Source: Macrostomum lignano (Eukaryota). From it: 43,525 nucleotides of DNA. Location of the stretch: contig NIVC01000204.1 in assembly GCA_002269645.1 (NCBI GenBank), forward strand, positions 1 to 43,525, in the 5' to 3' direction. The stretch's first letter is position 1. Each line of letters begins with the position of its first letter. Below are positions 38,101 through 40,174 of this stretch, piece by piece. A model generated the notes under the pieces. It had not been told where the DNA came from. It did no database searches and saw only the letters and a list, made by a program, of their open reading frames with translations. A program made the translations under genes and the position numbers.

Positions 38101-40174
38101 GTAGGGAATGACTGCGGGCCGGAGGAGGGGAGAGAGGAGGGGGAATAAAGAAGAGAGAAGGGAGAAGAGAGGAGATGAGGAGAGAGGAGAGTAGAGAGGA
38201 GATTAGAGAGAAGAGCGCTGAGAAGAGATGTACAATAGCTCGTAAACATTGAGCGGGCTGAATTGCTATTGTGAAGTTTCTAAAGACCCGAGGGCTGGAT
38301 AGAGAGACTTTGCGGGCCGGGGTTTGCCAACCGCTGGCCTAGTGGAACAATATCCTGGCGAAATTGACATTCGATGTGTGGAATCGAGTGAAAAAAGTGA
38401 CCATTTTTTATATTGAGTTGACACATCTAAGTGTCTTTAGGATCTGTGACATAAACATCGGATATTTATCTAAGTTCAAAGCTAAGTAAAACAGTAAAAC
38501 AAATTCATAATTCTTATAGAGCTGTCTTTTTTCGTTAAGATGTGACAGTTGTCTATAAACTCTATTGAAAAGTTTCAAGATATAACATGTACAAAAAGTT
38601 TGATAAGACTAATGTACAACAACCACTGTCACAAATGCTAAAGTTCAACAGATTCTGTCAAAATCGACTGCATCAAGACCAGCAAACTTGTATAAAATTT
38701 GGATTGAACAAATAAAAATTGCAAAAGCAACCGTATAGAGGATTTCTTGAAGAAGCTACTTTAAGACAGGCGGTAGCTTCTTGGATTGCAGAGACAGCAA
38801 GGTGGCCCTATCTAGTTTCTTAAGATCCGTGTTCAAAACCAAAGTCGGCATGCAGAAGGTCCTGATAGTGGCTATGTATTAATCAAGATTTACTCTGATT
38901 TATTATACAGTTGATCAACAATCAATAATTCGGACGCTAGTTAGTTTCCGCGTCAGCTATTTCTCGCGAGAGCATTTAAACAAACGTTGGAAAAAGATTG
39001 AGAGATTGTAGAGATCGCAGTGCTCAACAACTTACACCTCAACTCGTTCCACCTTCACCCCCCAGGGGTCCGTGGCATCGTCGAGTGACTCCTGCGTGGC
39101 GGGTGGCAGTGCGCGGCGTACGGTACAGAGACCGAGTATTTGCAACAAACTCGCAGCAGTGCTTCATCAACGACTAGCACGGAACAACAGCTAATAAATA
39201 GCATTGAAAAGCACTATGTTTAGTTTGTGTATACTTTACAAAAAAGAAAGTGGGGAGATTGAAAACGGATTGATTATGCCACAAGGCCAAGGTGAGCGAC
39301 AGCGCAGCACACTGCGTGTATGCGGTGGCGGCTGGGTGGTTGGGGACTTACACCTCAACTCGCTCAACCTTGACACCCCATGGATCCGTAGCGTCATCCA
39401 GCATGTTCTAGAAATTTGATTGATGGCAATCGTGGACGGTACATGTACAATACATGGAACTGAGAGAATGGGGACTATGAAGGTATTGGCGTGAGAGACT
39501 CGCAGGAAGACAGGAAAGCTAAAAGCAACTCATGACGCCCAATAAGTCTAGTGAAGTGTCAGTAAGGACTAACAAAGATTTCTTGGTCATACCTTCTCAA
39601 AGTGACCAGCTCATTAAAACGCAGCTTGTAAACTACCACAGGCTTTGATTCCACTTAAAAAAAACTTTTTGAAAGTCTAATTGCAGTGATTGTGGGAGTA
39701 CTAATTACGGCATCTGTACAAGCCAAAGTACTTTTTGAGAACAATGTCACTGCTTGCGGAAATATTGTCTGATAGGAAGGTTGCTTTTGGAAGACCCTAC
39801 GGAAATATCGATTGAATCTTGGAATTTTTTGATCCCTGATGATATGATTGTGGCAATTTGCATATACATGTATTTAATGCATTCAGAGTCAAAATTTGCG
39901 TGTATAATTATGCTGATAGAATCCTTGATATTGCATTAAGAGACTCCTAGATCGGATCTATTGAACTCACCTGCATCATGTTGCTGATGCTCTCTCGTTC
40001 GGATAGAATCTCCGACAGATTCTTTGTGCCCAGCACGTTTCTAAGAGTGGTGGCGGCCAGCAACCGAGTGGATCTGTCAGCGTCTTCAACGTTAGTGACA
40101 GCGATGACTGGATTGTAGATGCGGTAGTACACCACGGCGTCTACGGCCACCGTCACGGAGTCTTTGGTGAGCAC
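35134..40174 (-). CDS. STOM: Stomatin/band-7 (SPFH) protein, MEC-2/STO-like; 3' part only, 5' exons not found in the window
   Basis: Exons 40174-39971 ([19 protein letters not shown]...[18 protein letters not shown]), either 39407-39352 or 39091-39036 ([19 protein letters not shown]), 35982-35904 ([26 protein letters not shown]) and 35325-35134 ([18 protein letters not shown]...LQLRYLQTL...[11 protein letters not shown]). Phases are consistent (531 nt). Confidence 0.93.
35513..35659. repeat. (TCTG)n microsatellite in the last stomatin intron
   Basis: Read directly. Confidence 0.97.
36381..36672 (-). mobile_element. tRNA-derived SINE, copy 2 (stomatin intron)
   Basis: Aligns with 16900-17188 over about 250 bp (GGCCAGATGTGCAACCGACAGCTCAGCCGCAGCTATTGCG...). 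B-box GGTTCGATTC on the - strand and an (ATT)n tail. Confidence 0.8.
37177..37851. repeat. Long (TCTG)n array with TTAGTG interruptions and a 180-bp internal duplication
   Basis: The 60-nt blocks starting at 37381 and 37561 are identical. Confidence 0.95.
38057..38336. mobile_element. hAT (Charlie-like) MITE with 8-bp TSD
   Basis: TIRs CAGGGGTCAGCGAAC / GTTTGCCAACCGCTG, subterminal GCGGGCCG motifs, and TSD GCCTAGTG at 38049-38056 and 38337-38344 (CTAG-centred, typical of Charlie). Confidence 0.88.
39036..39091 (-). CDS. STOM: Stomatin alternative exon B ([19 protein letters not shown])
   Basis: 56 nt, acceptor CACGCAG, donor GTAAGT, phase 0 to phase 2. Confidence 0.85.
39352..39407 (-). CDS. 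STOM: Stomatin alternative exon A ([19 protein letters not shown])
   Basis: 56 nt, acceptor TTTCTAG, donor GTAAGT, phase 0 to phase 2. Confidence 0.85.

Follow-up and report, generated by a model that had tools for sequence, protein, structure and literature searches.

A tandemly duplicated, probably mutually exclusive exon pair within the SPFH domain of a stomatin gene of the flatworm Macrostomum lignano

Can one stomatin gene encode two versions of the same short segment of its conserved domain in neighbouring exons, of which each productive messenger RNA (mRNA) holds only one? This question is raised by a MEC-2-like stomatin gene located on the minus strand of a 43,525-bp contig of Macrostomum lignano (assembly Mlig_3_7; the whole contig is hereafter called the window), in which the 3′ two-thirds of the gene are present. 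The cages that stomatin/MEC-2 proteins build in the membrane regulate channels of mechanosensation and acid sensing. A preliminary description of the window had proposed that two 56-nt exons of this gene, here termed exon A (the Asn-Met-Leu or NML form) and exon B (the Glu-Ser-Leu or ESL form), are tandem duplicates used in a mutually exclusive manner. The comparisons reported here, which cover the window, four further M. lignano contigs and related genes of other animals, point in the same direction: the pair appears to be selectively maintained and to behave as mutually exclusive exons (MXEs), a reading to which we assign a probability of roughly three in four.

The product of the gene contains a Band_7 domain (Pfam, E = 4e-39), aligns with a chain of human stomatin determined by cryo-electron microscopy (9oh9; E = 3e-121, residues 18–280), and is 82–92% identical to proteins named “mechanosensory protein 2-like”. 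In a protein search, the GenBank protein PAA88047.1 (BOX15_Mlig017186g1, here P0003), which is the model annotated on the contig of the window, matched the sequence encoded in the window at 99%. At the protein level, the M. lignano stomatins P0002 and P0004 match the constitutive upstream exon (exon U) with 98.6–100% identity.

Exons A and B both start in phase 0 directly after an AG dinucleotide and both end with two nucleotides of a split valine codon, followed by GTAAGT; either of them joins exon U (ending at 39971) to the constitutive downstream exon (exon D, starting at 35982) in frame. The two 56-nt exons, their spacing of 260 nt, their AG/GTAAGT splice sites and their shared phase had been correctly recognized in the preliminary description, whose junction coordinates also fit the gene model. 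Within the window, exons A and B are identical at 41 of 56 nucleotides, and the change in amino acids is confined to the first two codons (Asn-Met versus Glu-Ser), with 16 of the 18 residues encoded by full codons being identical. Ten further codons differ synonymously; these include CTG/CTC and GAC/GAT in addition to the seven codon differences already listed in the earlier account, all of which were given correctly. When the two exons were compared together with 130-nt flanks using blastn, only exon positions 7–56 and the adjoining GTAAGT aligned (E = 5.7e-13), and the flanks proved to be as unrelated as had been stated. The resemblance ends where the exons end and is not explained by chance. 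No third copy of the exon was found in the window.

The length of the exons has a direct consequence for their use. As 56 nt corresponds to 3n + 2, the inclusion of both exons or of neither shifts the reading frame into an early stop codon: with A and B joined, translation would end after 12 codons of exon B, and with both skipped, it would end in exon D. Only one-of-two usage preserves the frame, as had been deduced from this length. Each productive mRNA would hold exactly one of the two exons, with both exons presumably being used in transcripts of the same locus, and transcripts with double inclusion or double skipping would be unproductive, nonsense-mediated mRNA decay being their probable fate. 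The products would be two otherwise identical stomatins, which carry either Asn-Met or Glu-Ser just before a conserved leucine that lines a pocket of the protein.

The same exon pair is present at other loci of the M. lignano genome, and these loci provide a measure of its age. Contig NIVC01002425 (L002) carries a recent duplicate of the window gene, in which the coding sequence is identical, the introns are 93–96% identical and the exon pair is the same. A distinct paralogue is found on two other contigs (L003 and L004, encoding P0005/P0006), where the pair occurs in the same order, an Ala-Met-Leu (AML) form followed by an ESL form; the intron between the alternative exons is 102 nt long in this paralogue versus 260/263 nt in the window lineage. 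In the constitutive exons, the window gene differs from L003/L004 by a synonymous divergence (dS) of 0.99–1.06 and a non-synonymous divergence (dN) of 0.012, and from a further gene copy, L001, by a dS of 0.85, with dN ranging from 0.003 to 0.012 across these paralogue comparisons. Between the window and L003, only the two exons and approximately 6 nt on each side of them still align within the 4 kb that separate exons U and D, and the best match of each exon is the one at the corresponding position of the other gene. Since the pair is found in both old paralogues (dS ~1), the exon duplication predates an ancient gene duplication; judged from these alignments, it is older than the split of the two M. 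lignano stomatin paralogues, and both lineages retain both copies. The antiquity of the duplication, which had been claimed from the window, is thus supported by independent loci.

The number and kind of substitutions in the two exons indicate how they have evolved since that split. At the synonymous divergence of the paralogues, approximately 32 differing sites per 56 nt are expected under neutrality over the whole path, and approximately 21 per branch. For exon B, 9 of 56 nucleotides differ between the window and L003, all of them synonymously (P ~4e-10 for so few differences against the ~32 expected). For exon A, seven sites differ between the window and L003, comprising five synonymous changes and one Asn/Ala codon, and the comparison with L001 yields 12 synonymous and 0 non-synonymous differences. 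Three to four of the changes in exon A are private to the branch leading to the window; all are synonymous, and their number is far below the ~21 expected (P ≤ 1e-7). In a Monte Carlo simulation, the chance that random substitutions in the exon are all synonymous was 0.015 for three substitutions and 7e-4 for five. Within the window, the synonymous divergence between exons A and B is saturated (proportion of synonymous differences, pS, of 0.87), but all 16 residues downstream of the two variable ones are the same. Because the changes are few and nearly all synonymous, both exons are very probably translated, and the purifying selection that had been postulated for both copies is reflected in change counts far under the neutral level.

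Database records of the gene products bear on how the exons are used. The GenBank annotation of Mlig_3_7 was built from StringTie/TACO assemblies and a de novo transcriptome and not ab initio (PMC5730564). Its models use exon B at the window gene and at its duplicate (P0003 and P0004), and the counterpart of exon A in the paralogue (P0005 and P0006; AML). The UniProt entry A0A1I8HZJ1 (P0001), derived from an older assembly, equals P0004 except for N179E and M180S and therefore represents the exon-A form, so that both products are already present, unremarked, in the databases. The sequence clusters that contain the M. lignano proteins yielded no Logan or ENA transcript members, and the matches to a short protein query across the junction were all short fragments from other organisms.

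In an AlphaFold model of P0004, the last helix of the SPFH domain comprises residues 170–188, the last strand residues 190–201 and the subsequent wall helix residues 204–246, with a confidence score (pLDDT) of ~88–90 in this part. The alternative exon corresponds to residues 179–197 and spans the junction of helix and strand; the segment, which had been described as the last helix and strand of the SPFH domain, is hence the C-terminal half of that helix plus the last strand, as judged from this model and from the alignment with 9oh9. In the full-length P0004, the hydrophobic hairpin, the wall helix, the cap helix and the C-terminal strand of stomatins are all present (model helices at residues 32–62, 204–246 and 248–266); the window itself is without the 5′ exons. 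The variable residues 179 and 180 are equivalent to Ser176 and Thr177 of mouse and human stomatin, and Leu181 and Thr185, shared by both exons, are equivalent to Leu178 and Thr182. In mouse stomatin, Leu178 and Thr182, the latter within the DAT motif, line a hydrophobic pocket; the T182W mutation abolishes the modulation of ASIC3 and ASIC2a, and T182A leaves oligomerisation intact (PMC3433786). The DATxxW region had been said to be implicated in both channel modulation and oligomerisation: the effect of T182W upholds the first of these links, and the lack of an effect of T182A shows that the second does not hold for the DAT motif (PMC3433786). The inter-subunit salt bridges published for the human stomatin 16-mer (E59–R70, R205–E262, E227–K220 and E243–K235) do not involve the positions that vary between the exons, so that participation of these residues in the published contacts was rejected (PMC12344292). 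The two-residue swap may have a functional effect, for example on the engagement of partners or channels at the pocket; the splice switch tuning a channel regulator, which the preliminary description had proposed, is likewise hypothetical.

Several observations weigh against the view that the pair is maintained as functional MXEs. Only one isoform is annotated per locus, the TACO setting used for Mlig_3_7 (--isoform-frac 0.75) removes minor isoforms (PMC5730564), and the UniProt NML model P0001 may have an ab initio and not a transcript basis. One gene copy, L001 (NIVC01000556, encoding P0002), carries the NML copy only (L001:10582–10637), so that at least one copy of the gene can do without the pair; no remnant of the ESL exon was found in the 3.4-kb downstream intron of L001 (tblastn, PAM30, E ≤ 50), and most simply L001 lost exon B after the gene duplication. 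Furthermore, the exon pairs of L003 (24751–24806 and 24909–24964) and L004 each share an identical 33-nt core at exon positions 13–45, which is probably the result of gene conversion between the tandem exons and could partly mimic constraint in the L003/L004 lineage; the window pair differs at 8 sites of that core, and its stretches of identity reach 11 nt at most. Finally, no positions of the exon vary more among animals than 179 and 180, and because they are so variable, a functional effect of the swap is plausible but may be small or subtle.

Part of this evidence also bears on an alternative in which both exons are used and the choice between them has no meaning at the level of the protein, reflecting splicing drift, subfunctionalisation among the three paralogues, or dosage control through non-productive transcripts. 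Such an explanation, which we regard as unlikely, would account for an annotated choice that differs from one paralogue to another (this gene mostly ESL, L003/L004 mostly AML and L001 only NML), for the present single-exon state of L001, for the location of the differences at the least constrained residues of the exon, and for the premature stops that result from both aberrant splicing outcomes. It is opposed by the retention, between paralogues at dS ~1, of both the Glu-Ser of exon B and the Met of exon A; as the same positions vary freely between phyla, this retention suggests that the difference itself has been maintained.

A second alternative, in which one copy is a dead relic that is never spliced into mRNA, would apply to exon A, as the GenBank model uses exon B. 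At the locus and its duplicate, the transcript-derived GenBank annotation contains only the ESL form, and the NML form is known only from the UniProt model of unverified basis. Against this stands the sequence of exon A itself, which retains an open frame, an AG acceptor and a GTAAGT donor, and which has accumulated its handful of private, exclusively synonymous changes within an intron that can no longer be aligned with that of the paralogue; moreover, the window pair shows no conversion tract between A and B. We accordingly consider it quite improbable that exon A is a relic. An artefact in which two paralogous stomatin genes were collapsed or mis-joined, which the preliminary description had named as one condition under which its proposal would fail, is conceivable in an assembly as redundant and repeat-rich as Mlig_3_7 (PMC5730564) but is ruled out for practical purposes, since exon A is followed by exon B in each of four contigs (the window, L002, L003 and L004), which stem from two ancient paralogues whose introns differ in length, and since the remainder of the gene is single-copy in each contig.

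The maintained, mutually exclusive pair preferred here can be compared with systems in which such exons have been described. WebScipio/Kassiopeia predicts MXE clusters of tandem-duplication origin from three features, namely that the exons are of the same length, that splice sites and reading frame are conserved, and that the sequences are homologous (Pillmann et al., 2011; PMC3228551), and the M. lignano pair resembles these clusters in all of them: the exons are of equal length (also in L002, L003 and L004), have compatible splice sites and the same phase, and are homologous. They are, in addition, neighbouring internal exons that encode the same structural element, and their joint inclusion or joint skipping is non-productive. 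The pair differs from the known clusters in that it is known from genomic sequence and annotated models and in that no competing RNA structure of the Dscam or 14-3-3zeta type was detected.

A literature search on the stomatin, Mec2 and CG42540 genes found no paper in which an MXE is described. The earlier statement that no such case in stomatins was known is in line with this result; among database records, however, RefSeq isoforms of molluscs already swap the same exon. In the scallop Argopecten irradians, XP_069120746.1 and XP_069120744.1 (isoform X3 versus X1/X2, 437 residues), and in the whelk Babylonia areolata, XP_076436461.1 (X2) and isoform X1 (290 residues), differ only in these 19 residues, and the mollusc loci contain two 56-nt copies in the same phase (L007:42434–42489 and 46084–46139; L009:50808–50863 and 55188–55243). 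The mollusc genes belong to the same orthogroup (83–86% identity) and share with M. lignano the 56-nt exon, its phase and boundaries, and the tandem arrangement, in which the canonical xSL copy lies downstream of the less canonical one. They differ in that the copies are 3.6–4.3 kb apart, compared with 0.1–0.26 kb in M. lignano, and in that they diverge at 5–9 residues along the exon (ANLYECTNPWGIHVERVEI, TSLDECTDPWGIRVERVEI), whereas the M. lignano copies diverge at the first two residues only. The bivalve and the gastropod share derived Cys, Ile and Ile residues that neither M. lignano exon possesses, which makes an independent duplication in flatworms and molluscs the simpler reading; the two pairs may alternatively have a common origin followed by later homogenisation. 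Among neodermatan flatworms, Schistosoma mekongi (L005) and Cichlidogyrus (L006) have a single copy of the exon, with no degenerate second one found (tblastn, PAM30, E ≤ 50), and the annelid Dimorphilus has a single copy, fused to the upstream exon. It is a tentative possibility that the 56-nt exon is a recurrent or anciently shared MXE hot-spot of spiralian stomatins, at which a swap near the equivalents of Leu178 and Thr182 would set the engagement of partners or channels in a cell-type-specific manner.

Other stomatin relatives are diversified at different places. In C. elegans, the splicing events of mec-2, which are regulated by MEC-8, affect the disordered C-terminus and consist of the choice between 3′ splice sites and the use of a giant cassette exon; like the M. 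lignano gene, it encodes a stomatin-family mechanosensory/chemosensory regulator, and its neuron-type-specific, functionally distinct isoforms are a precedent for function tuned by splicing, but these events do not exchange homologous exons inside the SPFH domain (PMC8934639). The isoforms of the “band 7 protein AGAP004871” of Penaeus vannamei (P0087, P0166, P0167 and P0168; 308 residues), which belong to the same orthogroup, show MXE-like substitutions of equal length at residues 134–165 and 283–308, and these concern two other exons and not the helix/strand exon.

Known mechanisms of mutually exclusive splicing were considered for the M. lignano pair. With 260/263 or 102 nt, the intron between exons A and B is not too short for splicing, and the AG...GTAAGT sites of both exons are of the U2 type; explanations by steric hindrance or by U2/U12 incompatibility were therefore rejected. 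In the interval between exons U and D, no intronic block conserved between the paralogues was found in a comparison of the window with L003, and no convincing inverted repeats were found, those detected being short, A/T-rich and away from the exons. RNA folding showed no excess either (z-scores of −0.39 and −0.64). Docking/selector RNA structures are consequently unsupported. What can be read from the sequence is a fail-safe that depends on the reading frame. The acceptors of the two exons differ, and this contrast is kept in both paralogues, with a U/A-rich acceptor (..ttctag) at exon A and a C-rich acceptor (..cgcag) at exon B; such a difference would be compatible with a choice made by trans-acting factors.

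The positions of the individual features are listed in Table 1.

Table 1. Features of the M. lignano stomatin gene in the window, given in the order of transcription
Feature	Position	Strand	Remarks
Short 5′ exon, MSDSGSNL	42482..42505	-	Donor GTAAAC; used by GenBank model P0003
Exon U, constitutive upstream, VLTKDSVTV...SISNMMQ	39971..40174	-	Ends in phase 0; donor CAG/GTGAGT
Exon A, 56 nt, NML form	39352..39407	-	Acceptor U/A-rich ..aaatttctag; donor GTAAGT; matches UniProt model P0001
Intron A-B, 260 nt	39092..39351	-	U2-type GT-AG; not conserved in paralogue L003/L004 (102 nt there); RNA structure of the region not unusual (z = −0.39)
Exon B, 56 nt, ESL form	39036..39091	-	Acceptor C-rich ..ccacccgccacgcag; donor GTAAGT; used by P0003
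Exon D, constitutive downstream	35904..35982	-	Gives third base of split Val codon, then start of wall helix
Last coding exon, ...LAHFMHKS then stop codon	35134..35325	-	

The two true 5′ exons of the gene (exons 1 and 2, encoding the membrane hairpin) lie beyond the end of the contig (43525): in L002, exon 2 is located approximately 5.8 kb upstream of exon U, and only 3.3 kb are left in the window. The 5′ exon of the GenBank model P0003 is situated inside the region that corresponds to intron 2 of L002, and the P0003 protein as modelled would have no membrane hairpin and only half an SPFH domain. The MSDSGSNL exon probably represents an alternative 5′ exon, an untranslated one, or a product of the contig being cut short. 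As for exon U, its counterpart in L003 (22161/22162) and L004 (11220/11221) has a GC donor (CAG/gcgagt) in place of the GT donor (CAG/gtgagt) of the window and L001.

The introns of the stomatin gene carry large simple arrays (41033–41710, 37177–37851 and 35513–35660), among them one array of approximately 20 repeats of a 34-nt unit, which produces long spurious open reading frames (ORFs), and two (TGTC)n arrays of approximately 169 and 37 copies. These arrays explain the reading frames with “TDRQTDRQ” and “LLVAFLSRPS” translations. Elsewhere in the window, a multi-exon gene on the minus strand (22404–31256) consists of a run of long coiled-coil ORFs, of which one segment matches the CEP290 coiled-coil family of Pfam (PF16574, E = 3e-08), and it likely encodes a CEP290-like centrosomal or ciliary protein. 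On the plus strand, overlapping, frame-shifted ORFs with a reverse transcriptase domain (RVT_1, E = 1e-10) in a GC-rich region (18498–20078; GC content 0.60) are a degraded retrotransposon copy.

The gain from the exon pair is incremental: tandem duplication is a familiar source of MXEs, and RefSeq models of molluscs already contain this swap, unremarked. Apart from the C-terminal isoforms of C. elegans mec-2, little is understood of how stomatins diversify their specificity. A swap of homologous sequences within the SPFH domain, beside the pocket involved in ASIC modulation, would constitute a compact natural experiment with two proteins that differ at two residues, and M. lignano is tractable for transgenesis, so that the deletion of each exon is possible.

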